A stretch of 64,000 nt of DNA from Adineta vaga (GCA_021613535.1 CP075492.1:8060001-8124000), one strand, 5' to 3'; shown: positions 2,168 through 37,278, numbered from the stretch's first letter. Numbers and translations: made by a program. Notes: generated by a model from the sequence alone, not told the origin.

Positions 2168-4559
2168 ATGACAGAAGAGATCATTCGTTGTGGCATATGT
2201 CATAATCAATATGTTAATCCACGGATATTACCGTGTTTACATACATATTGTCTAGATTGTATTAAACGAAATACTGTTATTGAAAACGATGAATTTGAAT
2301 GTCCTCGACAGGATACAACTAGAGTGAAGAGAAATTCTATTGATTCATTATCGGTCAATCAAACAATGCAAGATGTTATTGATTTCTTAGGTAAATAGAT
2401 TAGTTTCTATCATGATATTGATCTAAATTTCGCTCTAGCATTGTCATCCGGTTCAATTCAATGTTCAAATTGTTCTTCAACTAAATCCGAACATTGGTGT
2501 AATGAATGTTCGAAAAATTATTGTGCTGAATGTTCTAATACTATTCATACAATGCGTCCATTTCGTGATCATCATATACTTTCTATTCGAGAAAAACCGA
2601 GTGAATTATTTGCTTGTGAAAAACATACCGATGAAAAATTGAAATATTGGTGTCAAAAATGTGCTCAATTTGTTTGCAGTGATTGTTTGTTGAATGAACA
2701 TAAAGATCACTCGTATGTTGTCATTCAAAAAATAGCAAAAGAATTACAAACAAAAGTAACTTTTTAAAAAGAACATTTTATCATTCTATACAGTTTTATT
2801 ATCTCTAGATAAATGTAGATCTAGTTCATATTCAATCATCGTTGGATAAGAAAGTTAGTGAACGTAATAGTTTGTTAACAGCAAGTGGTATTGATCATGA
2901 ATTAAACAAGAAACAAATTGGTGAAGCAATGGAATTCTTACAAAAAGTTATTCGAGAACATGAACGAGAAATGCAAATGAAGATTGAAAATTTTCAAATG
3001 ACTGAAAAAAAAGAATTGGAAGAATATCATAATCGATTAGAAAATGAAGTGGAAAGTTTATATATACAGAAGAAAACATTAGAAATTCTTCTATCAAGTA
3101 ATGATCAAATGAAATTATTACGTGCAAGACAAGGTTTTCTCATTTATATCAATCGAGTTAATCAAATCTTAGCACAATTACGAGTACCAAACAAACGTGA
3201 ATATAGTATTGAAGGTATAGATATTGATAATGTACCAAAATTAAGAAATGAAATTCGACAATGTGGACAAGTCGTCGAAAAAAAAGTATCAATAATCAAT
3301 GGAGAAATTCATCATAATTTTCAATTAGAAAAATTCATTGTTGATCATGAAAATGAACAACGATGGAAGATTTCAATGGGACATTTAACCAATCAGGATA
3401 TAGAAATTATCACTAAAGCATTGCAACGTTATCCTGTGAGCAGAATAATCTTTTCTTTTGTCGAAGAAATATCTGCATTTTTCTGTTTACATAGACATTA
3501 ACTGAACTTCATCTAACTGAAAATGAAATTGATGATCAAGGTATAAGAAGTCTTGCTTCTGTTCTTGCACAAAATCAAGTAAGTATTTTCATTCTTGACT
3601 TTTCTTTTATCTATTTCTATCTATAGACATTAACAAAACTTTCTTTATATGAAAATCAAATTAGTGATGAAGGCGTACGATATCTTAGTGATGCTCTTGA
3701 TCTGAATAAAGTAAAACTAATTTTAATTTGTGTTCAATATACACTTCTATTTATTTAGGTTTTAACAACACTCGATCTTTGTCGTAATCAAATTGGTAAC
3801 CGAGGTATTCAATATCTTGCTGATATGCTTAGTAGAAATAAAGTAATGAAAATAATCAATTCATTTTGACAGCATCATCTATTTCTTCTATTGTACAGAC
3901 ATTAGAAATTCTTCATCTTTCTGAAAATCCAATTGGTGATCAAGGTGCACAATATCTTGCTGATGCACTTCAACAGAATAGAGTAATAATTCTTCTCTCT
4001 ATATTTCATATACATTCTCTATTGATATATAGCGATTATCAGTCATTTATCTCTCGCAAAATCAAATTGGTGATCAAGGAGTACATCATCTTGCTGATGC
4101 ACTTATGCATAATACAGTCAGTTCACTGATCTCTCACTCTTTTTCTTTCTTCAATCGTATATTTTCGTAGACATTGATAACGTTGAGTCTTTATCATAAT
4201 AATATTGGCGATCTTGGTGCTCAAAGTTTAGCTAAAGCACTCGTACAAAACAGAGTAATAAAAGAAATCTTCTCTACTTTGCTTTTCCATCTATATATAT
4301 ATATCGTTTTTATAAAGACTTTAACAACGCTCTATCTTGCTCATAATCAAATTGGTAACGATGGTGTCCAACAACTTCTTGATATTTTTCAACAAAATAG
4401 GGTACACGTCTTACAGCATTTCTTTCTCTCATACATTTTCCTTCTCTTTGATAGGCATTAACTACATTTAGTCTTCATCAAAATCAAACTGATGAAATAG
4501 CACAACAATCAATAAATCAATTTTTGAAAAGAAATCCTCATATGACAATATCTTGTTGA
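2168..4559 (+). CDS. TRIM-type RING-Bbox-Bbox-coiled-coil protein with C-terminal 28-aa LRRs (compact paralog)
   Basis: RING CGIC...PCLHTYCLDC...CPRQD, two B-boxes and a coiled coil. These are followed by seven 84-nt phase-0 LRR exons (3495-3578, 3627-3710, 3759-3842, 3899-3982, 4033-4116, 4171-4254, 4318-4401) and a terminal exon at 4455-4559. Introns are about 48-63 nt. The start codon is uncertain. Confidence 0.9.
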
Positions 4560-10588: not shown

Positions 10589-12652
10589 TTATGATTTCTG
10601 TTTGATACGTTCAAGATTCTTTCTACATACTTGAAGATTATGATGATCCAATGGTAATGCTTGTTGTCCAATTTCTACAGCACGTTCATAAAATGATCGT
10701 GCATTTACATAATCTATCATACCTTCATAAACGAGACCAATATTATTGTAAGACGATAAGAAACCATAATGATTTGATGGAAGTGATTCTTGTTTAATAT
10801 CAAGAGCTTCTTTATGAAATGAAAGAGCATCATTGTAAGCATATATACTATAATAAACATTTCCAATACTCATATAACACATAGCTAAATCAGGATGATT
10901 GCATGGTAGTGATAGTTTGTAAATTTCAAGAGCTTTTGCATATGATATCAATGCTTTATCATAATCACCTCGAATGAAATAAACATTACCAAGACTATTG
11001 TGAGATGTAGCTAAATCCAAATGATTGAATGAAAGTAATCTTTCTCGAATTTTTAAAGCTTTTTCATCCGAGAGAAGTGCTTTTGAATAAAGATGCATGC
11101 TACAATAACTATTACCAAGTTCATTGTATATATTCGCCAGATCAAGTTCATTAAAAGAAGAATTCTTTCTAAAAATTTTCAATGTTTTCTTATAAAAATG
11201 AATTGCTTTTTGATATTTTCCTTGAGCATCTTTGATGCGTCCTAGTTGATGATAAATAGATCCTTTATCATTGTAATTCGTCGTCTGTTTCAGAGATATT
11301 TTCAAAGTCTCTTCAGCTTTATCAAATTGTCCGATTTTAAATAATAATACACCTAATCTATACCATGCATTGGATAGTGGGTATGTTTCTTTTCGAATAT
11401 GATTAGTTAATGTACATAATTCCTTATCTTTATCATTTGTAAGTACTAACTTGACTTCGTACAATCGACTTTTTCCTTCCATTGGTTGAATGTCTCGTAT
11501 ACGAAAAACCGTATGCATAGAAAATAAAATTTCATCTTCATCACCAAAATAACTTATATTTTTCACTGAAGCAAAAGGTGTTCTTGATTGACTTGGATCA
11601 ATTTCCATAATGAATATAATTCCTACTAAATCAGGATTTATGATTGTCTTTGTTGCAAAATCCAATGCAACGCGATGAATTTTACTTGTAGACAAAAAAT
11701 TATTGAAAGATATTAATCCACCTATCGTTTGTTTCATTGTCTCGAAATCTACTTTTGATAAACCTTGTCCACGATATACTGTAAAGACATCAGAAGACAT
11801 TGAACGATCATGTTGATTCTCATGTAATTGTTCTATATGACGATGAAGATCACCAATAAAGAAACCCATGTGAGTTATTGTATTACCATCCAATGATCGT
11901 AATGAATGATTGAGCATCGAATAGAGAAAACAATGATATGTATACCACCAAATAGGTGATTTATCATGATAGGATTTTTGTACTTCTTGAATAATACTTA
12001 ATTCTCGTGTATTTTTATTGAATATATGACGAGCATATTTCAGATAGTTTTTCATATGTTTTTGTTCAAATTTAATCGTTAATAAAATCTCTTTGAAGAT
12101 TTGTGTATACATAAATGATGGATCTAAATGATTTAAAGTTTTATTTGGCATTACAAAACTTATTGGCATGGAGTTTTCTTCACATTGGCAAACGGCTTCT
12201 TTGAGAGCATCATAGATGGGTTGCATTTTTGTATAAATACCTTTTATTTTTGGCCACATTTGAGCCCATTGTTCATGTTGATTTCTATTTCGACAATAGA
12301 TAAATATTGAGTCTATTTGTAAAAGATCATGAATATTTGGTACACAATTTTTTCCATCAGAACCAGATACAATTAAACATATCTTCGTATTTGTGATATT
12401 ATTAATGAAATCAATACACTGTTGACGATCGATAAATGAATTAACACCATTTACAATCTGTCGTAAACGCGTAATTTTTCTACGATATGCAGGAGTTTTT
12501 AAGTTGATGTTTTTATCCAACCATATTAATAGAACGTTTTGGACTCGTCGACTAATTCTCTTGGAACATGTCCTAGTACGTTCAAGTGAATCATGAATAT
12601 CATTAGTATTGCAGACGCGAATCAAATTTGCATCATTCATTGTTGCTTGCAT
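10589..12652 (-). CDS. ADP-ribosyltransferase (R-S-E type) domain plus TPR repeat protein
   Basis: Intronless 687-aa ORF with VYRGQG, FNNFLSTS and EDEILF motifs, followed by about six TPRs (e.g. LATSHNSLGNVYFIRGDYDKALISYAKAL). Confidence 0.9.
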   Translation of the reverse strand: MQATMNDANLIRVCNTNDIHDSLERTRTCSKRISRRVQNVLLIWLDKNINLKTPAYRRKITRLRQIVNGVNSFIDRQQCIDFINNITNTKICLIVSGSDGKNCVPNIHDLLQIDSIFIYCRNRNQHEQWAQMWPKIKGIYTKMQPIYDALKEAVCQCEENSMPISFVMPNKTLNHLDPSFMYTQIFKEILLTIKFEQKHMKNYLKYARHIFNKNTRELSIIQEVQKSYHDKSPIWWYTYHCFLYSMLNHSLRSLDGNTITHMGFFIGDLHRHIEQLHENQHDRSMSSDVFTVYRGQGLSKVDFETMKQTIGGLISFNNFLSTSKIHRVALDFATKTIINPDLVGIIFIMEIDPSQSRTPFASVKNISYFGDEDEILFSMHTVFRIRDIQPMEGKSRLYEVKLVLTNDKDKELCTLTNHIRKETYPLSNAWYRLGVLLFKIGQFDKAEETLKISLKQTTNYNDKGSIYHQLGRIKDAQGKYQKAIHFYKKTLKIFRKNSSFNELDLANIYNELGNSYCSMHLYSKALLSDEKALKIRERLLSFNHLDLATSHNSLGNVYFIRGDYDKALISYAKALEIYKLSLPCNHPDLAMCYMSIGNVYYSIYAYNDALSFHKEALDIKQESLPSNHYGFLSSYNNIGLVYEGMIDYVNARSFYERAVEIGQQALPLDHHNLQVCRKNLERIKQKS

Positions 12653-12899: not shown

Positions 12900-14021
12900 T
12901 TATTCGGTACAAAAACGTTGTATTCGATGATTTAAATGATCAGCAACATAAATGTGACCATTTTGATCTAAGGTTAAACCCCATGGATAGTACAATTGAT
13001 TTTCTTCTTCTTCTTTTTCACGATCACCACTTGCAATAATAGTACCTTCTGTCGCTTCTTTAGGCCAACGCATAACTCGATGATTTCCATAATCTGCAAC
13101 GTAGATATTTTCGGATGCATCGACAACCAATCCTCGTGGAAAACCTCGACCAATAATAGTTCCTTCAGTTGCATCGCTATTCCATTTCATGATACGTTGA
13201 TTCAATGTGTCTGACACATAGAGAGTCTGTTGTGGAGTGACAGAGATATACGTTGGTTGATAGAGTTGATCAAGACCAATACCTTGTCCGTTTCCACCAG
13301 CGACAACGATGCCATTAGGATCCCCCATTTGATATCGTCTGACTTCATGATTTTCGATATCAGACACGTATAGATTTCTTTGATTATCCAAAGCTATTCC
13401 CCAACATCCAATGTTGTCAAGAAGTATTTCACCTTCAGTAGTACCTTCATTTCGAGACCATCGAACAATTCGTCGATTGCCTCGATCACAGATAATAACA
13501 CTATTTGTTTCTTTGTCCAAAAGTAGATCAGTTGGATTACTCAATTGATTTAGTTGATCTCCTTGCTCGTGACCACCTGCAATTATTTGACCATTCTTTT
13601 CATCTATCTTCCATTGAAGAATTCGATGATTACCCCAATCTGCAATAATTATTGTTTGATCCTCATCGATAACCAGACCATAAGGGTAACAGAATTCATC
13701 CAAACCATTGCCTGACCCATATCCACCAGCAACAGTCCTATTATTTTGAGCAGATCCTATTGTCAATGAAATAAACTTCGATAAATGAATGAATTTTCAA
13801 AACTTACGTAGAATAAGATGAAGTACGGCATTATCACCAATTCCATAACTTGATAATAATTTGCTATTTTTAAGTTGTTTTTCTCCAAACATGAGTCGTT
13901 GTAATTCAGTACGAATTCGTTCTTTACTTTGTATCTTTTTCTTTACATTTCGAACGGTATCATTCGGTTGAATGTCTAATGCTATTGATTTTCCTTCGAA
14001 GGTGCGAACAGATATTTGCAT
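12900..14021 (-). CDS. Ubiquitin-like domain fused to an NHL-repeat beta-propeller
   Basis: The UBL ORF (MQISVRTFEGK...LHLILR) joins the NHL ORF in frame through a 51-nt GTAAGT...AATAG intron (13807-13757), giving LHLILR-SAQNNRTVAGG. NHL repeats include IYVADYGNHRV. Confidence 0.85.
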
Positions 14022-14896
14022 TATTCTAAAAAAAAATGAGTTCGATTCTTATGCTAACTGTTTATCTTAGTTAAAGATAAATTTTGCTTCAAAAATCTTC
14101 TTTTTTTGTATCCCTTCTATACCAGTATATTTACGATAAGAAACGAAAAAGTCTGATGGGGTTTTCATGAGACATTCGTCTTCATCTTATAGACTTTAGA
14201 TGTAACCGATAAAAGTGAGTCTTGTACGTGCGGAAGGACTACACTTTTAGTATAGTATAGATAGAGTTAAGCAAGAATGAGAGGGATCTAAAAAACTTTT
14301 TCTTCGTAGAATGAATGCTTGCATACTAGTACTACTCAGAGAGGAACCTTATTCAATTATATTTTCTATGATATGTTATCTGAATATTTTCTCACTCCTA
14401 TGCTTGTAGACTCTTTTTCTTCGAACTGAGTTTGTTTGCCGCTCTATAGATATGCGCACACATTCCTTTTTTTTTATCAGCTTCGCTGGTCTATAAAAAG
14501 ACGTTTCAGAGGCCCTGTTTCATTTCATTATCATACTTGCACTCTCCATCACATCGTCAAAACATTTTTATATATGCGGTTTCATATATCGATAAGCAAT
14601 GAATATTTTTTCTTATTTAATTCCGTTGAGACGGCAAAAAACAGTTAACTTACATTCGTATTTGTACAGTCTACACAAAGAGAATCGCTCGTCGTTAAGA
14701 GTTACTATGCAAAAATAATGTGTTTTTGTTTTTTCTCTCTTGCCTTACCGCATTTTAACTGGGAAAAATTCAACAGCGACGTCTAGAAAAATGCGCATTT
14801 CTTCTATGTCTATTCTTTGTAGTCTTCATCTCTTTAAAACTCTTTTTTCTTCTAGATTTTACATTTTTTCATTACGATTATTTTCAATTGATCAAC

Positions 14897-17800
14897 ATGG
14901 CAGCTAATTTTACAGCATTAGTTGAAAATGTGATCACTTGTCCAATATGTTTGAAACATTTTGATGAACCACGTATGCTACCATGTAAGCATACATTTTG
15001 TTTACAATGTATCCAACATATGACCTCGCAAAACAATGGTCTGTTAGAATGTCCAAAGAAGGATGGAACTACCGTTGAAGGTCATAATATCAATACGTTA
15101 CCATCGAATCAAACTGTGCGGGATCTTATTCAACTATTTGGTAGGTCTTTAAATCACTTTTACGCACTTCACAATCTTACGAACATCCTTTCATATAGAT
15201 CATCCCGAACCTGCTTCTATTCAATGTCAGCGATGTGAAACTAGTGAAGCTGAACATTGGTGTGATAGCGATTGCAAACATTGTTTTTGTTCGAAATGTT
15301 GGGATGCCATTCATGATGTAGGTCAATATCGGAATCATACAAAACTTCCTGTCAAGGACAAACCTGTCGAAGTACCTCGATGTCAAGATCATGGGGATGA
15401 TGGATTGAAATATTGGTGTGAACAATGCACGAAAGAGATTTGTGGTGGATGTCAACAATTACAACATAGAGATCATCGCTTTGTTCTAGTTACTGGTTAT
15501 GTTAAGACCTTAGAAGAACAGGTATGTGTAATTTTTAAAAAGGATTCTTTCAAACTTAATTTGATCTTTGTTATTTTAGTGTGAAAATAACTTACAAGGA
15601 GTTCAGTCATGTTTGTCTTATCGATCGAAACGAGTAGATAAAATGATCCTCGAAGTTGAAAAAGAAAGTCAATCCAATCAAGTGAAGGTCAGCGAAACGA
15701 TGCAAAATCTTCGACAGCTTATCAATGAACAAGAACGCGTTCTGCTGGAAAACATTCGTCAGGATGAAAAGACTCAAAGGACATCAATCGAGGAATATAA
15801 ACGTTTACTTCAGGGTGAACAGCATGGTTTGATTGAACAAGTATTAAATTTCGTAGTTGTTGCGAAAGATAAACAACCGAAGAAACTTTTGGATGCAAGA
15901 CAACCATTTGAAAATTATATAAAAAGGACGAATGAGAAGTTACTAGAACTGAAGCCATTGTCTAGGATTAAAAAACATATAGTAGGTTTTGATAAATTGA
16001 ATGAATTGGAAATGCAAATTCGAAACATGAAATTGGAAAATACAGCGGAATACACAAATCAGCAACTTCAACAGAAAATTGCGAACAGTCCAGATAGATC
16101 GACGCTCAATTTAAGTTCATCAGCACTGACTGATCTTGATATGGAAATTGTGGCCAAGGAAATAGAAATTAACAGGGTATAAAAAACAATTATTTTGTCA
16201 TTTCAATTTAAAATACTATGTTTTAACTAATCTATGGATACTTCTTCTTCTTCGTTGCAGACACTTCGAACATTGCAATTGTATGCGAATCAAATTAGTG
16301 ATATTGGAGCACGACATTTAGCTGATGCTCTAAGAACAAATAAAGTGAGATATTTGTTCTTCTGATGATACTAATATTAGATTCAAATTGGATTAATTTA
16401 TGATATCGATATCATATTCTTTTCTGTTGTTGATATAGACACTTACTGACATACAATTGTATAATAATAAAGTTGGAACTGATGGATTGGAACATTTTGC
16501 AGATGCACTACGGACAAATAAAGTAAGTTGCTTATAATATATGCAATATGTCGACACAGGTTTGAGCAATCATTAGAATATATACAGGGTTTGACTAACA
16601 AGAATAAGTTATAAAACTAATTATTCGTGTGTATACTTTAATATTTCTTTACTTCCCATTACAGACATTGACTACATTGACTTTGTATCAGAATGGTATT
16701 AAGGATGAAGTGGCACAGTGTATTGCTGATGGATTAAAAGTTAATAAAGTAAGTCCTGAAAAGAAGACTTTTTTCAGTTTCTTTAGTTTTTCTTGTGGGA
16801 GGAAAGGCTTGAGATACATAAATCTTTCTGTTTAATCAAATATTGGTCTCATAAATAGGCACATGTTCGAGACTGAATATCAATAACTTACTTTAGATCT
16901 GTGATTCAAATCATCCGCTATTTTCCCCTGTATGTCTTGAAGTAGTATTCTTCAATGGAGATGTTTTCTCGCTAGTTTTGTATTAATGGGAACATGATTT
17001 ACTAGTAGGTGTTCTGATATTGACTTAAGAGGCTACATCCAGCGATTACCTCTTCTAACTACAAACATTTCGTAAGGAGAACTAAATATTGAGTCATAGT
17101 ACTTTTAATTTGAAAGTGTGCTCGTTATGTAAATATGAACAGAAAATGCTGGCACTTTTATTACATATATTTAATTACGTGTTTGTTTTGGAGCATATAT
17201 TTCATTTTAAAAATTATAGGAAATGGAAAATCAAATTCGAAATATCAATGACATACCAGCACCGAAATATGAAAATCAACAATTGCAACAACGTATTACC
17301 GCCAATAGAAATAGAACAATTTTAACTTTGAGTAGTTCACAATTAACGGACCAAGACATGGAAATTGTAGCTGCTGAATTGAAAACTAATACGGTAAGAT
17401 ACTTCTATCTCTTCGAATAGAATTCTACACCAGAACAGGGACTCGACTCTTGTTGAGGATATAGCAAAAATACATACAGAAAATAGAGGTAGCTTTTAAC
17501 TGTCGAGAAGATAGTAACATGACCCTCATTCTTCGTACATTATCAGTCTACTTTTTGTATATAGATAGTAACTCACTTGTATTTGAACGAAAATCAAATT
17601 GGAGATAGTGGAGCACAAAATTTAGCCGATGCACTAAAATCAAACAAAGTAAGTTGATACTCCCATAGATAAGTGTGATTACTTCTGAAACGCGTACCTA
17701 TCAAACATTTTAGTCAGTGACTAGTATAGTAGAGTCGTTCTTTCTTGATTGTTAACATCTCCTTTGATTTATCTCAAGGATTATGAAAATATTTTGACGT

Positions 17801-20800
17801 AAGAGATACCTAGCAGCACTGTTGGAGTTAAAACTGGTTGAATCGGTTATAACTCGATTCAATCCACTGAGTTAAAATGGTTAAGTTGGTTATAACCTAT
17901 TTTAACTCCAACAGTGCCTAGCAGAGAGTTTTATATGAGAATAAACTTCATATCCTTCGCACATTATAAGCTTCAGTGTGAAATATCTTCTTTAATATCC
18001 TTATCTACACTATACAACTTTCATTCTCATTACTTTTCTGACCGTCAAAACATAGTGATAAAATTATATAGAACATCTTCATTTTCTCGTATAGACGTTA
18101 AAGACACTAGATCTACATGAGAATCAAATTGGAGACATCGGAACTCAACACCTTAGTGAAGCCCTGAAAACTAACCAAGTAAGCTACTCTTTTAAACGAC
18201 CTATCCAATAGAAATGTTTAGTTAGTTTGATAGTCTCGTGTTTAACGATTCGATGAATTCTTTATAGTAAAGTGCTGTACTATATAAGTTGTACTCTGGT
18301 GATTTATATTCATATTTAAAGACTACTTTATATACAGAAAGACGATATTTATACGATTTTTTAGAATATTCAATCGCTCAGTAGATTTAGAATATAGATA
18401 TAATAGTGAATTCTTCGTTTTTTCTCATTAACGATGTATGAAATATTATAATATATTTTCTGATACAAATTTTGATGTACTATAGACACTCACACGTTTG
18501 GACATTTATACTAATCAGATCGGAGATATTGGAGCTCAGCATCTAGCCGATGCATTAAAAGTTAATAAAGTAAGTCAACTTCTCAAAAGAGAACACAAAT
18601 ATGGAACAGATCTAATTATTATAAGCTGAGGTCAAAATTTCGTGCTCCATAAGTTAGATATAGATGTAGTTTATAGTCCAGTAATAACAATGTAATCTCT
18701 TTAGCTAATATTTATTCATTGTTTTTAGAAAATCAGTTAAGTATCGATTGTTAGAATTGACTCTCGTCAGTACCTTTTTACTGCATTATTTCAATGGTTG
18801 AGCAGTAAGCAAACTAGCTCAGTTACCATGTTTCTAAAATTTTGAATTACGATACCGATCTAACTGGATAGTTCACTAATATTATGCGAGTTTAACGTCT
18901 CTTCTTTTTCCTCTGTAGGTATTAAAAGAGCTTCAGTTGTTTAATAACAAAATTGGAGACACTGGGGCACAGCATTTGGGAGATGCACTAAAAATCAATC
19001 AAGTAAGCAAGCTTATTCAGTTTATCTTTCCAATGAAGATAGTCAATAAATTAGGAAAATAGTTGTAGGATAGTTAGAAACAAAGAGTGAAATTCAGTTG
19101 AGCAAAATTCGAAAAAAAAACAATGTTTGAATAGTAGGAAAATCATTCTCTAGTTCATCTAATATATATTTGCATTCGCATACAAGATAGAATGAAACAA
19201 TAGGATATTTTAACGGTTTGAATACGTATACAATTTAGATAATGTCAAAATACATTCGTATTCACCAGTTCTTCTATAATTATATACACAGATATATAAA
19301 TCGAGTTCTTTCCTTCTATCGATAGAATATATTTCTTTCAAAAGTATCTAGGATTAAATAACATATGCCATACATCCTCCTTTGTAGAATACTAAAAAGT
19401 GCTGCTTACGATAATTTTCTCTAATTCTATAATGTAGACACTTACATTGATACAACTCCAGACTAATCAGATTGGTGACACTGGAGCACAGTATCTAGCA
19501 GATGCTTTAAAAATTAATCAGGTAAGGAACCTTTATATCTATAATTAAGGATAGGTATGAATAGGGCGTCAATTTAGCATTCACGTCTGCTTCATTCATT
19601 TGTATTTGCCTTGAACTTTTTCTACTATTTGAGCGTTGCGGATACTGATTGTGTTTTTAGTTGAATTTTACCACTTGAATAGCTTTCAAATATCGACATT
19701 TAAGCAATGATATTATGGTAATCTCACTTAATTTAAAGAGAGACAACTGCATCGGATTCGATTGCAGTCTTAAGTGAATTAGCGCTAGAATTTTCATTAT
19801 TTCTGTTTCTTTAATCAATCAATTAGCAATTTGAGTATATCTATAATGAGAATTATCTACTATTTGATCATAGAATATGTTTAACATTTTATATAGAAAC
19901 TAACATATGTCGACTTGGAAAAGAATCAGATTGGCGATACTGGAACACAACATTTAGCTGAAGCATTAAAAGTTAATCGAGTAAGCTGATTGTCTAGTGT
20001 ATTTTATCTAGCAGAGATATTTAACACATGAGAAAAATATTTACACAATTCTTAGAATATTCAAGTTAAGTTACCAAAATATCGTTTTACGTTGATTAGA
20101 TTATTAGAGAAAATGTATTACTTAGTTACGTGTCATCTAGTATTAATGAAGAGCGTCTTATGATTATCGTAGAAATTCCAATAAGATAGTACAATCATTT
20201 GAGAGTATAAATGAAATAAATATAATCTTTTCTCAGTTAAATATTTTTTTTCTTTGCTATTTAAAATTAGAAAGCACATGTATACTAAACATAATCATGT
20301 ATTTTCTTTTATGACAAATAAATAATAATTGCTTACTTTAAACATAGCTAATCTTGTCACATAGACACTGAAAGACTTGCGACTTCAAAAAAATCAGATC
20401 ACAGACAGTGGAGCTCAGCATATAGCAGATGGACTAAAAGCCAATCAAGTGAGCTACGTTTGTTGATAAACTTCACATTGAGATCTCCGTTTTATCGTAC
20501 ACTATTCTTAAGTATTCAGTATTCCACAATTATATTTAAATATGTATAGTGAAAAACTGCTATAGACAACATTGATCATAACTGTTTGTTCGATTTCGAA
20601 TGATGCACTCACATTTTATACAAAGTGATAGTAGTTATCTGTATAAAGAATGACCATAGAAATTCAAGACATGAAAAGTAATTACAGTAATGTTTTTAAT
20701 ATATTTAAAATAACTTCATAGTATAAATAAATCTAACCGACATGCTTTGATAGCATATGTGACATGTCTGAGTTGTACATAAGAAAAGACAATATGAAAG

Positions 20801-23800
20801 ATGCTTTCTTTAAAGGAAGGTAAAATTGTCAAATTTCAATACATCTTTTTCCCCTTATCGTATTAAAAAACGTATTTCTACTGAAATTTTAGTTTACTCA
20901 AAGAAATAGTGCTGTGATGTTGATATTAATGAAGGCATATTTTGTTTATAGAAAATCAGAAGAAACATACTATCTAACATGGATGTTATTCTAATAGTGA
21001 ATCTGCGCTTGATCGAAATAATTGTAAGAACGAGTAAATAAGGATATTTGAAAAGTTCAATAGGTTTCTAAGAGATTAGAAATAGAAGAAATATGCTTAA
21101 TTGACAAAAAGTAGAATTTTGACCGCTAGTGTTCAGTAATACTTATATTCATTATTTTGATTTCTGCTGTAGACATTAAGCATATTAAATCTAAATCAAA
21201 ACCAAATTGGAGATAACGGAGCACAATATCTGAGTGATGCGTTAAAAATTAATCAGGTAAGATACTATTCAAAATGCTTTCACTACTATAGATTAGAGAC
21301 TAGTTAAGCGATTTGAGCTCGTTACAGTTCAGTACTATCAACTAGAGTTCATAGTTGTAATTCTAATTGAATGCTCAAAGGTATCTTTGGATTTTCTTCT
21401 AAAATAAATCTGCGAAAGAAAGTTAGGTTTGTCTTTTCAAACAAATTCGTTCTTTTCGTCTTGTTACGTTTTATTCGATAATATGTTATCGTGTTGACAA
21501 TGTAGTTTGTATATCTTACTAGAGTTGTTTATAGAGATTTTTATATAACCTCTGAATTATTACCATAGCAAGAGTATAAATCAGATAACTATTGCTTATA
21601 TCTTAGAATATTTTTATTCTGTTGAATGAATACAAGAACGAGTAAATCAAGAAAAAAATCGTTGTTATAGATTGCATTCATGTGGATAGTGTTTTTCGTT
21701 TTTACAATGAGACTCAGTGAAATACAAGGAGTCATAAAACAGAGCTGAAATTAAATATCATTTATCATTTACTCACACCCTTTTCTTCATAGTCTCTTCA
21801 ACAAATCTCTCTTAGTGTAAACCAAATCACTGATGCTGGAGCACAATGTTTTGCGGAGACGTTAAAAGTCAATAAAGTAAGACATCGTTTCTTTAAACTT
21901 ACTTCTTCCACTGAAGACACATTTAGAGTAGTTAGATTTTGAGTAGAAATCAAGAAATGTATATTTTATTCTATTAAAATGCAGGAAAATGCTTACTTAG
22001 ATATAGCCATTTAGCTTATTGGCAGTTGCTTTCATCTCACTCTATTAAAAGGAAACTTGTCAGTTAAACTAGAATTACGGGGTAAATGGTGTTCTTTTTT
22101 TATTTATTCCTATAGAATGTGTTTTTTAATGTATATTTATAACGTCAACAATAAAGTCGTTTTTTTCTAATATATTAAGGCCTAAACTAAGGTAGATTCT
22201 ATTCTATCGTTTTTCGAATAATCAATATAATCAAATCCTCATCTACTTTACTGCGTTATTAACAGTTAATAGTGTTTATTTGAGAAATGTACAAAGAATA
22301 GATACAATATGATTTTTTGACTGATCTCTACCGTTACTTCTCACGCATCCTATCAGTAAATACGCGAACACATTTATAAACAATTAGATTAAGAAACCAA
22401 AATGATGATTATGCTTCTGAATATTCATCCGTCCCTTTTTTTATGTAGACGTTAACACTATTGTATCTTGATCAGAATCAAATTGGAGATATTGGAGCGC
22501 AACAACTAGCAGAAGCACTGAAAACAAATAAAGTGAGTCATATTCTCAACTCATATCTGAGAAAAATATTCACATTCTTGAACACATCTACTGAAAGACT
22601 GATAGTTATCAGGCATGCCAAAGATTTGTAACAGATTGTCACGTTTTCCTTTGACATAACTTCAATCTTATTTTGAATATGAAGAGATTCTATATGTTAT
22701 TAGATCTTTTATTTGTACTTGTCTCACAGGTATCTTAGTTTTATCGAGTTGTGCTTCGCATGTACCATCCGCTCGCATTAGTAAATGGTAACATTATTAG
22801 TGTTTATCTACAACTATTTCACATTTAAACTTTGCTATTTTTTATAGACAATAGGATGTTAATGAAATTTAGTCTATAAATAGTTTTTCCTAGCTCATTA
22901 GGACTAGCTTAGAATAGAGAGAGAAATCTTACTGTACTATACTTACTATATTTCGATAATATTCGTTTCAATTGGTCAAGCGTAATGTATTCAATGTATA
23001 TATACAGAAAATTCATCCAACAAATTAGTGTACAGATAGAACACAATTTTGAAAACCATAATATCTGAATAGTTTAGGCTATTCTTCTCTTACCTTCTCC
23101 AGCTCTACGTAGGGTTATCGGGAAGATAGCAGATTCATAGGTCCATCCTCGTTGTGTTTTCTCAATGCTATTTCATATATCATTAACGAATAGACACTCA
23201 CTCAACTATGGCTTCGCGAGAATAGAATCACGGATACCGGGACACAACATCTAGCAGATGCTCTTAAAACTAATACGGTAATTCAGTTTGATAGTTGATT
23301 TTGAAGACCATAGATTCATATGCGATCATTTAGAGTGCTAAAATTAATAGTCAGTACGGGAAAAGATCTCAGTTTTATCTATAGCTTAAGAAAGTTCTAC
23401 AAATTCAGACATCTTATGAAACCTTCTCTTCACGATAAAGATTAACGTGAATCATATGATAATACTAGATGAAATCGAGATTAGAAATAATCGATAATTA
23501 GATATTCAATTCTAAGAGAAGCGTTCAAATCTGTATTTCTTGTTAACATTCTAACTATTTACATCTGTACAAAAGTTTATTTTGTCACAAGTATACACGA
23601 AAACTTCGATAATCAAAGATCGTATTCTTGCCTTTCATACACATTTTATCTAAGAGTAGTGTTTACGAAAAACGCATGTGAGATTTGATGTTAGTTTCAA
23701 TGCACTTGAGCCTCTTTCGATTAGAAACTTCATCAATTTTGAATGATGACATAGTTCATCTAATTCAGAATATTCCAGTGTCGAAGTTTTTAAAATAGAA

Positions 23801-25889
23801 AAATATTTAATAGTAATTCCGGTAGGAAGAAAAATGATGTATTAGTGAGATTGATGATTCTCACTTATGTATGTCGACTAGAAGATGTTAATAATATTTA
23901 ATCGTTTGCTTAAAAATTATAAGATGAGATGACCAAAACAGAAAATCTTTTACATAAATTGTTTGAAAATATACTACAAATAAATCCTAGATTAATTCTG
24001 TTACTTATTATGAATGATGAGAATATTTCTTCGTTTCATTCAATGGATACAAAATAACCAATTCTTTTATGGCCGTATATGAATATACAACGTTACCCGT
24101 TATCGATACAATCGTTGCCCTATATTTATCTATCTCAAAATTATATAAATAATAATAGAGCACACTATCTAATTCAGTTTTTCGCTATGACTCCGTGTAG
24201 CTATTCGAAAATAGAAATTTTTAGATAGTTTTCATTCGACTTAATGCATTGACATTAATTTGATTTTAAAATAGGTTCTTACTCAACTGTCCTTGTATCA
24301 AAACCAAATTACAGATACAGGTGCACAATATCTCGCCGATGCTCTGAAAATCAATAAAGTAAATTCATGTTTTGATGAAAATGATTGATCCAAGATTAAA
24401 GTGCATTATAGAGTATTCTCAAATTTAGTTAAGAGAATGTTGCGTTCGCTTCCTAAAACTGAAGCAAAAGAAGAATAGCTGACATTTCTATATCAGATCC
24501 AGCAGTAACCATCTCTATAAGGCCGTGTTTGCGTCAGATAACGTTCTCCTAAAACTTTTAATTCTGCAAAAAGTTACTTTTCAGCGAAATTAATTAACTT
24601 TACTGATCTCCTCAAGATATAGAGGCCTCTAGAATATGATTATAGATGTTGAAGAGCGCTTGTGAGTATATTCTATGAAATTATTCAACTGTTACAGACA
24701 TTGACACATCTGGTTTTACAACAAAATCAAATTAGTGATAACGGCGCCCAACAACTTGCTGACATGTTGAAAGTTAACAAAGTAAGCTGTCTATTTCGTT
24801 CATCAGCTTGACCTTGTTAATCTTTTTCGAAAATCTGTGATCCATTAAAGCAAAAAGATAGTAAACTACGAGCGAATAGTAGCCAGGTAAAAATGTTATA
24901 GGCAGGACCATTTTTACGTTTCTCATGGTGAAGGTATCTCTCATTCTACCTCTGCCAGCATCTTACTTCATGAGAAATCCTTATCTTGATAGAATACTAC
25001 CTATTTTAAGCAGTTCGTACACTCATCGCCAGCGTATCGTTTTTGATACTTGAGCCGATTCGACGGTGCTAATGGAGAGTATATAATGAAGATACCGATA
25101 ATTTTTCATTACAATGTTATTCTCATCATTTTCGCTATCATATAATGTAGACACTCAAGGAACTATATCTTAGTAAAAATCAAATCGGAGATAATGGAGC
25201 ACAACAGCTGACCAATGCTCTTAGAGAGAATCAGGTTAGTTATTTTTTAGATGACTTTCAGAATTCACTGGCATGTTATGTTAGTAATGGATATAAGTTT
25301 CTAGATAAAAAATCCAATTAGATTAATGAACATAAACAGAAAGTTGATTCATAATAACTATAGAAATATCGCATAATTGTCAAAATATCTTCTAGCAATG
25401 TCACAGAACTCATTCAAGTGCCCTCCATTGTTGTAAAACGTTTCAATTATAGTTTGCAACTTAGAACATAATATTTGACTTTCTGAAGACAGATTAAAAA
25501 CTACCAATAAGCTTGAGAAATCAGCTTAGTTTTTTACTAAAGCCATATCGAATAGTTTGATAGATCATTAGAAGAGATGTCGAAACTGATGGTCAATGAG
25601 ATTAGAAAATATGAGAAAGTAGACAACTTCTATACTTTCCAAATTTTCACGTAGACACTGACTCATCTCTACCTAAAAAATAATCAGATTAGAGATAGTG
25701 GAGCACAAAATCTTGCCGAGGCTCTAAGGAACAATCAAGTGAATATTCTAGTTTTGTTTATTTTCTTCATTTACTCAATTTTCATTTCTTTTTTAGACAA
25801 TACAACTTGTATACCTTAATAACAATAACAACATATCCGCTCAAGTGAAAACTCGTCTGAAGCAGCAAGATCAACGGTTGAATTTTTAA
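14897..25889 (+). CDS. TRIM-type RING-Bbox-Bbox-coiled-coil protein with an expanded LRR cassette-exon array (980 aa if all exons are included)
   Basis: Exons 14897-15140 (RING), 15199-15521 (two B-boxes) and 15580-16176 (coiled coil plus cap), then 18 LRR exons, a cap-like exon at 17220-17393 and a terminal exon at 25797-25889 (TIQLVYLNN...QRLNF*). All junctions are GT-AG and in frame. Confidence 0.92.
16261..25738 (+). repeat. Array of 18 phase-0, 84-nt LRR exons
   Basis: Exons at 16261-16344, 16439-16522, 16665-16748, 17565-17648, 18095-18178, 18486-18569, 18919-19002, 19438-19521, 19897-19980, 20365-20448, 21173-21256, 21793-21876, 22449-22532, 23194-23277, 24275-24358, 24698-24781, 25151-25234 and 25655-25738. 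Consensus TLxxLxLxxNQIGDxGAQxLADALKxNK/Q. Each has AG immediately before and GT immediately after. Confidence 0.95.
17817..17916. mobile_element. 100-bp MITE with 17-bp perfect TIRs and an 8-bp target-site duplication
   Basis: TIRs cactgttggagttaaaa and ttttaactccaacagtg, flanked by cctagcag at 17809-17816 and 17917-17924. Confidence 0.9.
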
Positions 25890-32461: not shown

Positions 32462-32886
32462 AAAACAAACACAAAGACCTATATTTTTTTCTATTAACAC
32501 ATTTTTAGAGAAGAACTTAGTTCTTTGAATAATAAACTCGAACATTTGCTACAAAAGAAAAGTATGTTCACGTACTTTCTCTTAGTGGAATTCATGTTAG
32601 TTATCGTACCATAATTAACTTTGTTAAAGTTATTTTTAACTGTAATTCTTGAAAAATGGCACAGATTATTTTATTAAAACCTTTGATCTGTCTACCTATT
32701 AGTCTCATTTAAAAGTTAAAGATGAACGATGATTCTAAATATAAATCTCTAGTAAAATTACGTTTATGTCGGATGTAAAAGACATGTTCTCGAGCTTCTT
32801 TGTACATTTCATTAAAATCCTATACAGTATATATTGATTTAAAAAAAAGAAGCTCATCTCATTCGATAGACATTTTTAAAAAAAAT

Positions 32887-33810
32887 ATGCAACCCTTACT
32901 GAAATTTATCTTACTTGTGACTTTTCAAATTCCAGCAATATGTATTTCAATCTTTATTTTGATCTATTTTGCATTTGATCGAACTATTCGATCGAAACGA
33001 GAAAATCACATATGGTTTATTCTTCTTATTCTGAATTTCTTTTATTTAATTTCTGATTTACCAATGACAATGAGTTATCTCTATTATGGAAGAATTTTAT
33101 TCGAAACAGATGGTTATTGTGTTTGGTGGACATGGTATGAATTATCATTAAATACACTCGGATTACAACTCATGACTTGGGCATCGATTGAACGACATTT
33201 TTTTGTATTTCATTCTCATACAATTATGCGTGTACAATGGAAAGTTTGGATATTACATATTATTCCAGTTATTCTCTGTTTTACATGGGTACTTACATTT
33301 CATTTCATTTTGATTGTCATTTCTCCATTTTGTATTAACACGTGGAATTTTGAAGTTGTTCGTTGTGGTTCACCATGCGTTTTTACCATTGAAAATCCTC
33401 TTTATGGCTTGATTGAATTTGTAGCAAATATTGCTTTTCCTCTCGCTGTACTTTGCTTAGCGAATATAAGTCTGATTATTCGTGTAATCTATCAAAAGAT
33501 TTCTCACAATCAAATTATTCATTGGCGTCGTCATCGTAAAATGACATTTCAATTATGGATGATATCTTCAGTCTATCTAGCATTTTGGTTACCCTTTACA
33601 TTATCACAAATCATCCGAATCACTGTTATGCCAACCTTTTTTCTTGATCAATATGACACGATACTATTTATTATTTATTTCATTCCATTATTATTACCGA
33701 TAGTATGCTTAAATACATATCCGGAATTATTAAGAAAAATGCGTGACATTATACAAAGACGAATACGAAGAAATCGAGTGGATGTACGCACAATTCGAAA
33801 TATTCATTAG
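32887..33810 (+). CDS. Orphan rhodopsin-class GPCR
   Basis: Seven hydrophobic segments and WASIERH at the DRY position. No intron in the visible part; the start is uncertain. Confidence 0.82.
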   Translation: MQPLLKFILLVTFQIPAICISIFILIYFAFDRTIRSKRENHIWFILLILNFFYLISDLPMTMSYLYYGRILFETDGYCVWWTWYELSLNTLGLQLMTWASIERHFFVFHSHTIMRVQWKVWILHIIPVILCFTWVLTFHFILIVISPFCINTWNFEVVRCGSPCVFTIENPLYGLIEFVANIAFPLAVLCLANISLIIRVIYQKISHNQIIHWRRHRKMTFQLWMISSVYLAFWLPFTLSQIIRITVMPTFFLDQYDTILFIIYFIPLLLPIVCLNTYPELLRKMRDIIQRRIRRNRVDVRTIRNIH

Positions 33811-34146
33811 AATTAGTTTTTAAGTAGTTTGAAATCATTCAGAAAAAGAACAATTTTAGTTTAATAAAGATTTAACTGAAGTAGAACACTGTAATATTAT
33901 ACTTGCACCAAAAATATAAATAATGACGTTAAGGAAGCCAGAGAACGGAATGAATAAATAACACCCTTAGAAGAAAAAGCACATTATGCTTGTTTTTTGT
34001 TTTTGTTTGTCAGAATTGATAGTGTGTTGTGCAATTTTGATGACGCTAGTCTTACCAACATTCAGTGCACTTGTGTCAGTTTCTATCAAACTATAAATAC
34101 AAATACAAAATGTATCTTACTTTTACTTACAAAATTAATACGAAAT

Positions 34147-37100
34147 ATGACTTCGGATCTTAATCTATTCTTATATCCAAATGAAAATGGTTTCATTGGT
34201 AAACTTGCATTGAATACATCAGAAAATGCTAATATCAAGGAAAATCTTCTATCGAAATCGAAAATTTCTACCATTGTCATTCTCGATCGATCTGGTTCAA
34301 TGGGTAATTCTGTTCCAAGATTTGTCAATCAAATCTTACCTTCTGTTTTCAAAATTCTCGATTATAATGTAAATGAGATCATTACATTAATTACATTTGA
34401 TAGTAATGCAAATTTATATCAAATGCCATTGGAAAAATTTCCTAGTTTTAGTATTAAATGCCAAGGTTCAACAAATATGGCAACGGGTGTAGCAACACTA
34501 ACTGATTTTATTCTGAAGAAATTACCACAAGATTGTCGAAGTTTACGATTATTAACAATATCTGATGGTGAAGTTTCAGATCAACAGCAAGTTCAAACGC
34601 TTGCAGCTCAATTAACTTCATTTATTAAAAATGATTATATAATCAATTCACAAGCTGTTCGCTTATTTACTTCGAGTTCTCAACCTGATACACGAGCTGT
34701 ATCAAGTCTTTTACAATTAAATAACATTTCAACTGTTCATCTACTTGATCTAAAAACTAGTTTATCTGATAAAGAAATATCTGCTACTATTGCTAGTCTA
34801 TATTCTGAAGATTCATTAGATCAACATGCTGTTCTGAAATCGAATGAATCGATTCTAAAAAGTACACCCTGGCAAGAAAATACTTATGACACAATTTCAT
34901 TATTTCCTGGTGAAAATTTATTTTGGTTAAGTGAATTTCCAAGTGGAAATTTAACTGTCGGTGATACAAATGTTCAAATTCATATACAAGAAAGTTTAAC
35001 TGTAGATACATATGAAAAATTATTACATACAAAAATTGAATATTATATAAATCAATTGAAAATTTTGAAAGTAGTTAATACAAAAGAATCACAAAATGAA
35101 ATCAAAACAATGACGACGTATTTTCAAAATATGGAAAGTTCATTATCAGCCAATGAAAATGATGTTAAAATTCTTCTCAATGATTCAAGTTTACGTGCAC
35201 GTTTACAATATTTGAAAAGTTCAATTTTACGTCGAAAAAAATCATTTATTATGCGAATGTCACAAATTGCTAATGATGATAAAGTTTCGCAATTGAATTC
35301 GGCTCAACAAGCCGAATATTTACGTGCTGTAGATAGTTCATCGAAAAATGCACGTGGTTTAGCAAGACGTGCTGTGACACAAGGATTAGATTTTAATGAA
35401 ATTCTTCGAAAAGAAGTTCGACAAATGGCACAACATATAGATGAATTAAAAAATATTAATGATGATGATCATTTAGTTTCATTTTTTTCACAAGATACAA
35501 CACTGGGTGGTATTCGTGCTGTATGTCAACTCGTTGCTGACAATATGTTAGATGATACAGATGCGAATGATATTTTACGAATGGTTAATATCGTTGGAAT
35601 TGCATGTGCAGGTCCAATCGGAGAATTTCCAGATCCAATGACTTGGCGCGTCAATGAAATCTATCAAGGTTGTTATGTTAGTTTAGCTGATGTTCTCATG
35701 GCTTTTATTCAATCGAAAGGACAACATTTACAAACACCTGCAACAAATAAAACTATCACTAATGTCATACCAATTATTGAAGATGGACGTATTGCAAAAT
35801 TTTTACAAAAATATGCTCCTTCTCTACTGGAATATACATGTTCCATTGGTATGAGACGTTTACTAGCCGATGTACCCATGACAGCTGGTTATACAATTTG
35901 TGCCGGTATTTGGAAATTCATTGAAGATTTAAATACACACAAATCTGAATTACATCTGAAAACATTCGAACAAGTAGTAAAAACTTATGAAATTATTATT
36001 GGAAATTATTTTCAACATGTCATGCCTTATATTAAAGAACAAAAGAATGATATGTCGTATTATATTGCAAATAATGGAACAACAAATATGATTAGTCCAA
36101 TGATTAAATTATATCGTGAAAATGATGCAAATAAATTAAAACAAATGCCGAACATTTTACGTGCGCTATATACATACGAAATCTGGCAAGGTGTTCGTCG
36201 ACAATATAAAAATCGTGATGATTCTGATTTAATTGCTCAAAAAATGCTCGAACGATTAATTGGATTAGATTTAAATAAATACAAAACATCATTACAACCA
36301 TTATACGAACCTGAACCGACATTAAATGAAATTTCATTTCATGATCAATTACATATCGATCAAACTTATCTTGATGAATTACTTCAAACAGTTTATTATG
36401 TTGATTATGTAACACTATTGCCGAAATATATTTCTGCTGTTGTGAATAATAATACTGATAGTATTAAACAAATCTCATCCATTGATGAAAATTTCATTTG
36501 CAAAGAATTAAAAATCGATTATGATTTACAAACGTTTAAATTTTATAATGTTTTTCAAGCATTGTACTATACTAGTAAAGCTAGTCGAGTTGATAGTGAT
36601 AATGAAACAATGAAAATGATCGATTTAATTGATGAACAAGCTGCACAAAAGATTGTACAAGATTATATTCGTAAACGATTTGAAAATCAATATGCAACAG
36701 ATTTAGCGACAAAAGGACAAGTTGAACGAACAACATTAACTTCAACATTAGTTCAATCAATTTTAGATGCTACTGAACATAATGAAATGGTTACATTGAT
36801 ACGCGAAGGTTTAGTACGTGGTAAAATTCGAGTAGCAATTGCTAATACATCAAGTTTAGGATTTGCAGAATTGCAAAATCGATCATTGGATTTGCATGAA
36901 ACTGTTCCTCGACGTTTAGATATCCTTGCAGTTCTTCTCTTAGGACGAGAATATAAAAAGAATGATGAACCCGTATGGAATAATGGTAATGCTTTATTTA
37001 CATCGAAACTAGCAGAATATAAGCGTGCTTTTGTTACATTGGGTTTTGCTGGAGTATGGGAAAAGATAAGAGCTGAACATAAGAACCGTACTTTATATAC

Positions 37101-37278
37101 TTATCGTGATGGATTTAATCGACATGGACATGGTAATACAAAGCCATCGTATTGGGCGCATGGACATATGACCTTGCAATTGTTCAAGGAAAATGTCTCA
37201 CCTGAAGATTTCAAAGAATATTGTGAAATTCATCATGATTGTTGCGGAGTGTCACAAATCATCGGACTATTGAAATAA
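34147..37278 (+). CDS. Large intronless VWA-domain protein (~1043 aa)
   Basis: MIDAS motif ILDRSGSM, STNM and LLTISDGE, followed by a long helical region and a His/Cys-rich tail. Confidence 0.85.
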   Translation: MTSDLNLFLYPNENGFIGKLALNTSENANIKENLLSKSKISTIVILDRSGSMGNSVPRFVNQILPSVFKILDYNVNEIITLITFDSNANLYQMPLEKFPSFSIKCQGSTNMATGVATLTDFILKKLPQDCRSLRLLTISDGEVSDQQQVQTLAAQLTSFIKNDYIINSQAVRLFTSSSQPDTRAVSSLLQLNNISTVHLLDLKTSLSDKEISATIASLYSEDSLDQHAVLKSNESILKSTPWQENTYDTISLFPGENLFWLSEFPSGNLTVGDTNVQIHIQESLTVDTYEKLLHTKIEYYINQLKILKVVNTKESQNEIKTMTTYFQNMESSLSANENDVKILLNDSSLRARLQYLKSSILRRKKSFIMRMSQIANDDKVSQLNSAQQAEYLRAVDSSSKNARGLARRAVTQGLDFNEILRKEVRQMAQHIDELKNINDDDHLVSFFSQDTTLGGIRAVCQLVADNMLDDTDANDILRMVNIVGIACAGPIGEFPDPMTWRVNEIYQGCYVSLADVLMAFIQSKGQHLQTPATNKTITNVIPIIEDGRIAKFLQKYAPSLLEYTCSIGMRRLLADVPMTAGYTICAGIWKFIEDLNTHKSELHLKTFEQVVKTYEIIIGNYFQHVMPYIKEQKNDMSYYIANNGTTNMISPMIKLYRENDANKLKQMPNILRALYTYEIWQGVRRQYKNRDDSDLIAQKMLERLIGLDLNKYKTSLQPLYEPEPTLNEISFHDQLHIDQTYLDELLQTVYYVDYVTLLPKYISAVVNNNTDSIKQISSIDENFICKELKIDYDLQTFKFYNVFQALYYTSKASRVDSDNETMKMIDLIDEQAAQKIVQDYIRKRFENQYATDLATKGQVERTTLTSTLVQSILDATEHNEMVTLIREGLVRGKIRVAIANTSSLGFAELQNRSLDLHETVPRRLDILAVLLLGREYKKNDEPVWNNGNALFTSKLAEYKRAFVTLGFAGVWEKIRAEHKNRTLYTYRDGFNRHGHGNTKPSYWAHGHMTLQLFKENVSPEDFKEYCEIHHDCCGVSQIIGLLK

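Follow-up and report, generated by a model that had tools for sequence, protein, structure and literature searches.

A 64,000-nucleotide stretch of the Adineta vaga genome (GCA_021613535.1, CP075492.1:8060001-8124000; hereafter the window, with positions counted from its first letter) carries on its plus strand, at 14897-25889, a single gene that joins the RING finger, B-boxes and coiled coil of a TRIM protein to an array of leucine-rich repeats (LRRs). This gene, NCBI locus I4U23_013293 and here termed the TRIM-LRR gene, has one exon for the RING finger, one for two B-boxes, one for the coiled coil, 18 that encode LRRs (L1-L18) and a terminal exon; an extra exon of 174 nucleotides, E174, splits the LRR array (Table 1). 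The assembly searched is haploid and comprises 100.8 Mb in six contigs, in which the window is G000:C3:8060001-8124000.

Two products of the locus are present at NCBI, both under the name 'hypothetical protein I4U23_013293 [Adineta vaga]': UJR09045.1 (P0099, 667 amino acids) and UJR09044.1 (P0105, 775 amino acids). They agree with the window exons residue for residue. P0099 runs from L14 into the following intron, past the weak donor GTAATT, and ends in the tail VIQFDS. In what follows exons were searched singly, while full-length analyses used these two database products.

Exons and predicted domains

A direct scan of the window found the 18 LRR exons, or cassettes, to be each exactly 84 nucleotides long, preceded by AG and followed by GT, open in frame 0 and of phase 0-0. 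Each encodes one 28-residue LRR of the ribonuclease-inhibitor (RI) type with the consensus TLxxLxLxxNQIGDxGAQxLADALKxNK, in which N10, L24 and N27 are invariant across the cassettes. A DNA profile prepared from the 18 recovers every one of them (E 1e-12 to 1e-19) and detects no further or decayed cassette copy in the 16-64 kb portion of the window, introns included; it also matches eight cassettes of a neighbouring paralogue, at 3495-4506. Because all cassettes have the same length and phase and begin at the same point of the repeat, any of them can drop out without breaking either the reading frame or the solenoid.

An earlier note on this DNA, made from the sequence alone, had described these 18 exons with their borders, phase and repeat type, downstream of a constant RING-B-box-B-box-coiled-coil (RBCC) part, and had remarked that any subset would splice in frame. 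All of this holds: the cassettes lie where the note put them, the upstream domains are recovered by Pfam (RING, B-boxes) and AlphaFold2 (coiled coil), and the coiled-coil and terminal exons that it delimited match the NCBI products exactly. Its picture of an uninterrupted array was right as to the 18 cassettes but overlooked E174, which lies between L3 and L4.

E174 is a duplicate of the tail of the coiled-coil exon, containing linker and cap LRR, and it starts a second LRR module. The partial copy of the coiled-coil exon extends over 17199-17390 and is 53% identical to residues 135-198 of that exon. In the DNA run X2 (see below) the exon carries 14 differences from the reference, between 17235 and 17326, which change eight residues; its flanks differ by about 2%. 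The RNA-like runs agree with the reference across E174, unlike X2. Gene conversion from the coiled-coil tail was considered as a source of the X2 variant and is unsupported, five of the 14 variant letters matching that tail.

The protein begins with a RING finger, directly followed by two B-box stretches, both recognized by Pfam, and then by a coiled coil, the order found in TRIM proteins. The coiled-coil exon (199 residues) has no Pfam match; AlphaFold2 models it as helices at residues 181-285 and 289-312, with a predicted local distance difference test score (pLDDT) of about 70-76, and a weak match to the TRIM coiled-coil family PF25600 (TRIM_CC) is seen only in the homologues P0032 and P0020. 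The solved chains nearest to the RBCC part are those of TRIM3, TRIM28 and TRIM2, and the coiled-coil region aligns with the B-box/coiled-coil region of TRIM3.

For the LRR part the best sequence match is ribonuclease inhibitor (1dfj, 2.6e-51), followed by the LRR domains of NOD2 and NLRP proteins, and the family LRR_6 is matched at 8.7e-43 in the orthologue P0001. The AlphaFold2 model contains a small LRR module at 350-442, a disordered stretch at 444-478 that precedes the E174 residues, and a second solenoid at 483-660 (pLDDT 80-95). The 28-residue scaffold is reflected in a strand/helix period of 28, as is typical of RI-type LRRs, and in the model each cassette begins three residues ahead of its beta-strand. 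Neither the single exons nor the full NCBI products contain a NACHT domain, as an NLR would; the families matched there are those of RING, B-box and LRR only. On these matches the gene product is a predicted E3 ubiquitin ligase, cytosolic and of TRIM type, with an RI-type LRR domain where TRIM proteins usually have other C-terminal domains.

Cassette skipping in RNA-like contigs and annotated products

Contigs of three RNA-like sequencing runs from three studies (X14, X13 and X20), together with those of the DNA run X2, were placed on 16100-22099. Depth in the RNA-like runs falls on exons and is zero in introns; X2 covers every bin of the region. The joints leading from the coiled-coil exon through L1, L2 and L3 to E174 are common to the runs, with GT..AG borders. 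Beyond this constant part the paths fork. The donor of E174, at 17393, joins three acceptors, those of L4, L5 and L6; L6 joins L7 or L8, L7 joins L9, L8 joins L9 or L11, L9 joins L11, and L11 joins L13 or L14. Most of the skip joints are present in two or three of the studies, at depths like those of adjacent joints (in X13, 16 for E174 to L6 and 10.8 for E174 to L5, with 13.2 for L4 to L5). RNA depth is zero on L10 and nearly zero on L12. Contigs end about 30 nucleotides beyond each exon edge, as expected of a k=31 graph with branches at exon borders.

Both NCBI products skip L4, L5, L8, L9, L10 and L12, and P0105 additionally skips L18. Between E174 and L14 the alternatives observed amount to 3 x 4 x 2 = 24 paths, a count that applies only if the choices are independent; on that condition the isoform diversity demonstrated so far, in the part examined, is modest.

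Three sources of artefactual joints were considered and rejected. The longest exact word common to two cassettes is 20 nucleotides, below k=31, so the de Bruijn graph cannot have fused cassettes into chimeras. Cross-mapping from paralogues is countered by the best other match in the assembly being 72-81% identical. Reverse-transcriptase template switching is rejected by inference, every joint lying exactly at GT..AG, with an ambiguity of 0-3 nucleotides.

One difference between contigs and annotation concerns L3. At 16665-16692 both NCBI products begin this exon at an internal AG, 27 nucleotides in, at a cost of nine beta-strand residues; in the RNA contigs L3 is complete (16522 to 16665). The internal AG is a minor acceptor or else a mistake in the annotation.

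The matches that represent orthologues are confined to bdelloids, namely A. ricciae, A. steineri, Rotaria socialis, R. magnacalcarata, R. sp. Silwood2 and Didymodactylos carnosus, and also include environmental transcripts. In R. socialis, A. ricciae and R. magnacalcarata four or five products are annotated per locus, and they differ by whole cassettes. A single contig of R. socialis has products of 811, 811, 839, 895 and 895 amino acids, whose whole-cassette differences were mapped on the locus (L007); these products contain the counterpart of E174 and use R10, the orthologue of L10. R. magnacalcarata has products of 717, 745, 689 and 672 amino acids on one contig and of 733, 761, 784, 789 and 705 on another, and its P0001 differs from P0082 by exactly the orthologue of L8. 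Those of A. ricciae (790, 790, 790, 818 and 846 amino acids) differ by cassettes 5, 8, 9, 11, 13 and 14 of 18. All four species show the same pattern of cassette isoforms, which is also that of the RNA contigs. A cluster of paralogous TRIM-LRR proteins has one length (531 amino acids) across many assemblies, without a series of 28-residue steps.

Exons of constant length and phase go together with in-frame skip junctions in three RNA-like runs and with annotated isoforms in four species, as in modular LRR splicing. Exon skipping, put forward in the earlier note together with a check for non-adjacent RNA junctions, is borne out by GT..AG joints in three studies, by two NCBI products and by product series in three other bdelloids. 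The outcome that the note had named as refuting it, one transcript carrying every exon in order, is at odds with these data.

Table 1. Exons of the TRIM-LRR gene, with window coordinates and the evidence for each (CC, coiled-coil exon; arrows, exon-exon joints)
Feature	Coordinates	Strand	Evidence
Exon 1, start codon and RING finger	14897..15140	+	Pfam zf-RING_UBOX 9.6e-12 and zf-C3HC4 5.4e-9, matched at 14897-15139; residues 1-81 of P0099 and P0105
Exon 2, B-box 1 (ZZ-like) and B-box 2	15199..15521	+	Pfam zf-B_box 6.7e-13, matched at 15201-15521, and CEBP_ZZ 5.4e-6; in P0099 and P0105
Exon 3, TRIM coiled coil, linker and first LRR cap repeat	15580..16176	+	AlphaFold2 helices; joint 16176→16261 in three runs; exact match to P0099 and P0105
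L1 (constant part)	16261..16344	+	CC→L1 and L1→L2 in X14, X13 and X20; orthologue R. socialis R1
L2 (constant part)	16439..16522	+	L1→L2 and L2→L3; orthologue R2
L3 (constant part)	16665..16748	+	Joints 16522→16665 and 16748→17220; internal acceptor 27 nucleotides in in NCBI models
E174, extra 174-nucleotide phase-0 exon	17220..17393	+	In all three RNA-like runs, P0099, P0105 and R. socialis products
L4, optional	17565..17648	+	E174→L4 (X14, X20; loose end in X13), L4→L5; skipped by E174→L5, E174→L6 and both NCBI products
L5, optional	18095..18178	+	E174→L5 (X14, X13), L5→L6; skipped by E174→L6 (X13, X20)
L6	18486..18569	+	Acceptor for E174 and L5; donor to L7 (three runs) and L8 (two runs)
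L7, optional	18919..19002	+	L6→L7 and L7→L9 in three runs; skipped by L6→L8; L7→L11 in NCBI products
L8, optional	19438..19521	+	L6→L8, L8→L9 (X13), L8→L11 (X14, X13); skipped by L7→L9
L9, optional	19897..19980	+	L7→L9, L9→L11 (X13, X20); X14 contig continues into unassembled cassette-like sequence
L10, intact, unseen in RNA	20365..20448	+	Zero depth in X14, X13 and X20; covered by DNA run X2
L11	21173..21256	+	Acceptor for L8 and L9; loose ends reach into the first letters of L13 (X20, X13) or L14 (X14)
L12, rarely used	21793..21876	+	Seen in one X13 contig only, which has 5 mismatches; left out of both NCBI products
L13, optional	22449..22532	+	L11→L13 loose end exact at 22449; skipped in X14 L11→L14 contig; in P0099 and P0105
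L14	23194..23277	+	L11→L14 loose end exact at 23194; in P0099 and P0105
L15	24275..24358	+	In P0105 only
L16	24698..24781	+	In P0105 only
L17	25151..25234	+	In P0105 only
L18	25655..25738	+	Intact, AG/GT borders; in neither NCBI product; orthologue R26
Terminal exon and stop codon	25797..25889	+	Exact match to P0105 C-terminus

Intron lengths, paralogous arrays and cassette evolution

Introns are short in the constant part of the array and long in the variable part. In A. vaga they measure 94 and 142 nucleotides within L1-L3 versus 171-997 further on; the corresponding values are 79 and 58 versus 218-979 in A. ricciae, and 84 and 72 versus 174-956 in R. socialis. The exon/intron design is common to A. 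vaga and A. ricciae on the one hand and R. socialis and R. magnacalcarata on the other; two genera and at least four species have kept it.

The caveat of the earlier note, that one LRR per 84-nucleotide exon is also met in constitutively spliced vertebrate NLR genes, has a counterpart in A. vaga itself: such arrays are widespread in its genome, which holds at least 1836 candidate cassettes of the 84-nucleotide type. All 12 paralogous arrays sampled (loci L008-L019) have 10-24 cassettes apiece, repeating with a rigid period of 140-143 nucleotides (about 152 in one), with introns of about 57 nucleotides (about 68 in one). An F-box exon lies upstream in seven of ten sampled arrays, and an ADP-ribosyltransferase exon precedes one (L019). 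Examples of F-box-LRR arrays in the assembly are C1:1360642-1362414, C4:277281-279404 and C6:11990843-11993908. Exon modularity is thus the rule in this genome, and intron length is the special feature of the TRIM-LRR gene.

A tandem TRIM-LRR paralogue lies 12 kb upstream, at 2126-4506 on the plus strand, with introns of about 50-60 nucleotides. Its exons encode a RING finger (2126-2398), a double B-box (2441-2767) and a coiled coil (2842-3501), followed by about eight LRR cassettes. It provides a natural short-intron control for the splicing hypothesis.

Decayed cassettes and transposons were considered as causes of the long introns; the introns contain neither, their sequences occur only once in the genome, and none resembles another. 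Long introns may shift the small exons to splicing by exon definition, which would permit skipping. The same 84-nucleotide cassette occurs in dozens of arrays with introns of ~57 nucleotides and, here, among long introns with skipping; this natural splicing experiment makes the link between intron length and exon definition directly testable.

Variation among the cassettes is highest at positions 4, 6, 8 and 9, which are exposed on the beta-strand. The order of cassettes in A. vaga is largely collinear with that in R. socialis (L1-R1, L2-R2, L4-R4, L6-R6, L8-R7, L10-R10, L15-R23, L18-R26). Reciprocal best pairs share 52% identity at the variable positions, compared with 17% for paralogous cassettes, although the choice of pairs biases this comparison upward. 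Summed over ten A. vaga-R. socialis pairs, the proportions of nonsynonymous and synonymous differences (pN and pS) are 0.18 and 0.65; for L10/R10 they are 0.16 and 0.49, though L10 is unseen in RNA. By these sequence comparisons each cassette keeps its own identity under purifying selection, L10 included. With pN this low relative to pS, the cassettes resemble a fixed toolbox of modules more than a hypervariable receptor evolving fast in an arms race.

The number of cassettes is nevertheless not constant in evolution. In R. socialis it is at least 26, owing to a block of seven cassettes that was recently duplicated in tandem along with its introns. The duplicate blocks (L007:6549-10628 and 13066-17118) differ by pS 0.09 and pN 0.035, and their introns have lengths of 769/769, 361/361, 589/587, 665/667, 834/808 and 274/273.

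Explanations, known systems and neighbouring genes

The explanation we favour, and hold to be probable, is that one gene encodes a TRIM-type ligase whose LRR domain is spliced as whole in-frame cassettes into a family of isoforms. The gene structure, the domain identities, the skipping and its occurrence in four species of two genera are shown by the data above. A first LRR module, made of the cap repeat and L1-L3 with their short introns, is constant. The second module begins with the duplicated cap exon at 17220-17393 and continues with up to 15 one-repeat exons (L4-L18) in long introns, from which the spliceosome can omit cassettes and leave a continuous solenoid, shorter or differently composed. 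Skipping occurs at levels comparable to inclusion and gives an in-frame family from one locus. The members of this family would differ in what their LRR faces bind and hence in the targets they ubiquitinate; these targets may be foreign or danger-related. An immune role is unproven, and is suggested by analogy with TRIM5alpha and TRIM21, with the LRRs of NLRs and with LRSAM1.

Several points weigh against this explanation. The RNA type of the three runs is a software guess, one that the exon-only coverage supports, and the transcript evidence consists of short de Bruijn contigs over 16100-22099, with junction choices unphased and levels expressed as k-mer depths. The isoform series of the other species are gene predictions. 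Docking/selector pairing was not found, the search of the introns yielding no more than two weak inverted repeats, and Adineta and Rotaria share no conserved intron block. The 52% identity between genera at the variable face argues against fast arms-race evolution. Moreover, part of the junction variety may be allelic: the L7 to L9 contigs carry non-reference single-nucleotide polymorphisms (18966, 18968 and 19002) that are also found in a divergent DNA sample, and an X14 contig continues past the end of L9 (19980) for 47 more letters of cassette-like sequence that begins ACGTTGCTCATGCTGG and reads TLLMLEVGSN. Searches for this loose end, ACGTTGCTCATG, came up empty, both in the window with up to six mismatches allowed and in the assembly with up to three; the unplaced cassette may exist on the other haplotype only.

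Among the alternatives, splicing noise fares best, and we think it unlikely. It would have long introns cause random skipping in a genome tuned to introns of ~57 nucleotides, with in-frame products that escape nonsense-mediated decay and have no function. Such noise would be in keeping with the limitation of skipping to the long-intron part of the gene, with the introns of about 57 nucleotides in typical arrays, with the scant use of L10 and L12 and with the failure to find regulatory RNA pairing or a conserved intron element. It fits poorly with the recurrence in both Adineta and Rotaria of long introns, of a variable zone right after E174 and of whole-cassette isoforms, and with the state of the rarely used cassettes, which are intact, with canonical splice sites and low pN/pS. 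The paralogues show in addition that short introns are easily kept, were skipping harmful or pointless.

A further-reaching proposal is a splicing-based repertoire, in which up to 15 conserved cassettes would be included independently. The resulting cytosolic receptors, each with its own concave face, would number in the hundreds to thousands, and their mix would shift on infection or stress so as to mark foreign proteins, such as those of fungi, viruses or transposons, for ubiquitination. We regard this as distinctly doubtful. If true, it would be an RNA-level route to immune diversity, kept across the bdelloids, a largely asexual clade.

It is improbable that the forks reflect allelic structure, that is, haplotypes with different cassette sets or splice-site variants, each constitutively spliced. 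The polymorphisms of the L7 to L9 contigs and the cassette-like sequence missing from the haploid assembly speak for it, as does the evolution of cassette number, with the R. socialis duplication as an example. Yet two constitutive alleles cannot account for the three acceptors that the 17393 donor joins within single runs; X2 covers all bins and has no cassette deletion; and the isoform series of three other species lie on single contigs.

DNA-level shuffling, which the earlier note had offered beside exon skipping, is scarcely credible as somatic rearrangement of the kind seen in the variable lymphocyte receptors (VLRs) of lampreys, for beyond that analogy and one unplaced cassette nothing favours it, while the 6 kb examined in X2 contain no exon-exon joint, all joints lie at GT..AG borders in genomic order, and the germline gene is complete and largely collinear with its orthologues in another genus.

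The favoured explanation, cassette splicing of a TRIM-LRR gene, is a variant of things known already, namely TRIM ligases and NLRP3-style skipping of LRR exons. Human NLRP3 has modular LRR exons, whose in-frame skipping yields LRR isoforms with a changed interaction surface (Hoss et al. 2019, PMC6642158, where lamprey VLRs are also mentioned). With NLRP3 and other NLRs the TRIM-LRR gene shares RI-type LRRs, exon borders at the same point of the repeat, and skipping that keeps frame and fold. NLRP3 differs in having exons of 171 nucleotides with two repeats each, instead of 84 with one, and two major isoforms (full-length and minus exon 5), compared with at least eight different skip junctions over many cassettes here; moreover the effector here is a TRIM RBCC, not NACHT-PYD.

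TRIM2 and TRIM3 (with NHL repeats) and TRIM5alpha and TRIM21 (with PRY-SPRY) have the same succession of RING, B-box 1, B-box 2, coiled coil and C-terminal recognition domain, but in the A. vaga gene that last domain is an RI-type LRR array. Ribonuclease inhibitor (RNH1), the best sequence match, shares the LxxLxLxxN...L..L..N scaffold. Its repeats alternate between 28 and 29 residues, with two repeats per exon; here all repeats have 28 residues and a ligase module is present.

Drosophila Dscam1, a surface receptor with Ig domains, employs mutually exclusive choice within exon clusters, guided by docking/selector RNA pairing. Both genes derive many recognition isoforms from arrayed similar exons of one locus. 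In the TRIM-LRR gene, however, adjacent cassettes are included together (L4 to L5 to L6, and L6 to L7), and cassette skipping makes the number of repeats variable. A search of its introns for complementary elements found none, and its product is a cytosolic protein. In lampreys the germline VLR gene is incomplete, and cassettes that flank it are built in at the DNA level. Recognition surfaces there too are composed of varying sets of LRR cassettes; the A. vaga gene is complete in the germline and varies in its RNA. Closest to home, the F-box-LRR arrays of A. vaga, like FBXL receptors, place the same 84-nucleotide cassette on a ubiquitin-ligase module, with an F-box instead of the RBCC and rigid introns of about 57 nucleotides.

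In the literature searched we found neither the term 'TRIM-LRR' nor a report of cassette splicing in rotifers; the TRIM evolution papers retrieved do not contain 'leucine-rich repeat', and the bdelloid infection and spaceflight transcriptome papers do not mention the gene. The infection study did not examine metazoan genes (PMC11258130). Expansion of the LRR family in A. vaga was already known (PMC3846280).

What the locus adds is a single conserved gene that yields a set of predicted E3 ligases with differing LRR recognition domains by cassette skipping. Bdelloid rotifers are a textbook case of long-lived asexuality in which defence against parasites is an open question, and work on that defence has so far centred on horizontally acquired genes.

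Other genes were noted in the window. Just upstream of the TRIM-LRR gene, at 12900-13766 on the minus strand, is an open frame with NHL repeats (5e-41); an NHL-repeat gene adjoins the R. socialis orthologue too (L007:1953-2849), which suggests a partly conserved neighbourhood. Further upstream on the same strand, at 10589-12652, an intron-free frame of 687 amino acids matches ADPrib_exo_Tox (8.2e-8) and ART (2.6e-5) and continues with TPR repeats (TPR_12 7.4e-44). Downstream are a plus-strand open frame of 1093 amino acids at 33997-37278, without a Pfam match, a weak match to a 7tm_1 receptor (7.3e-6) at 32800-33810, also on the plus strand, and a carboxylesterase (1.2e-88) at 40893-42533 on the minus strand.

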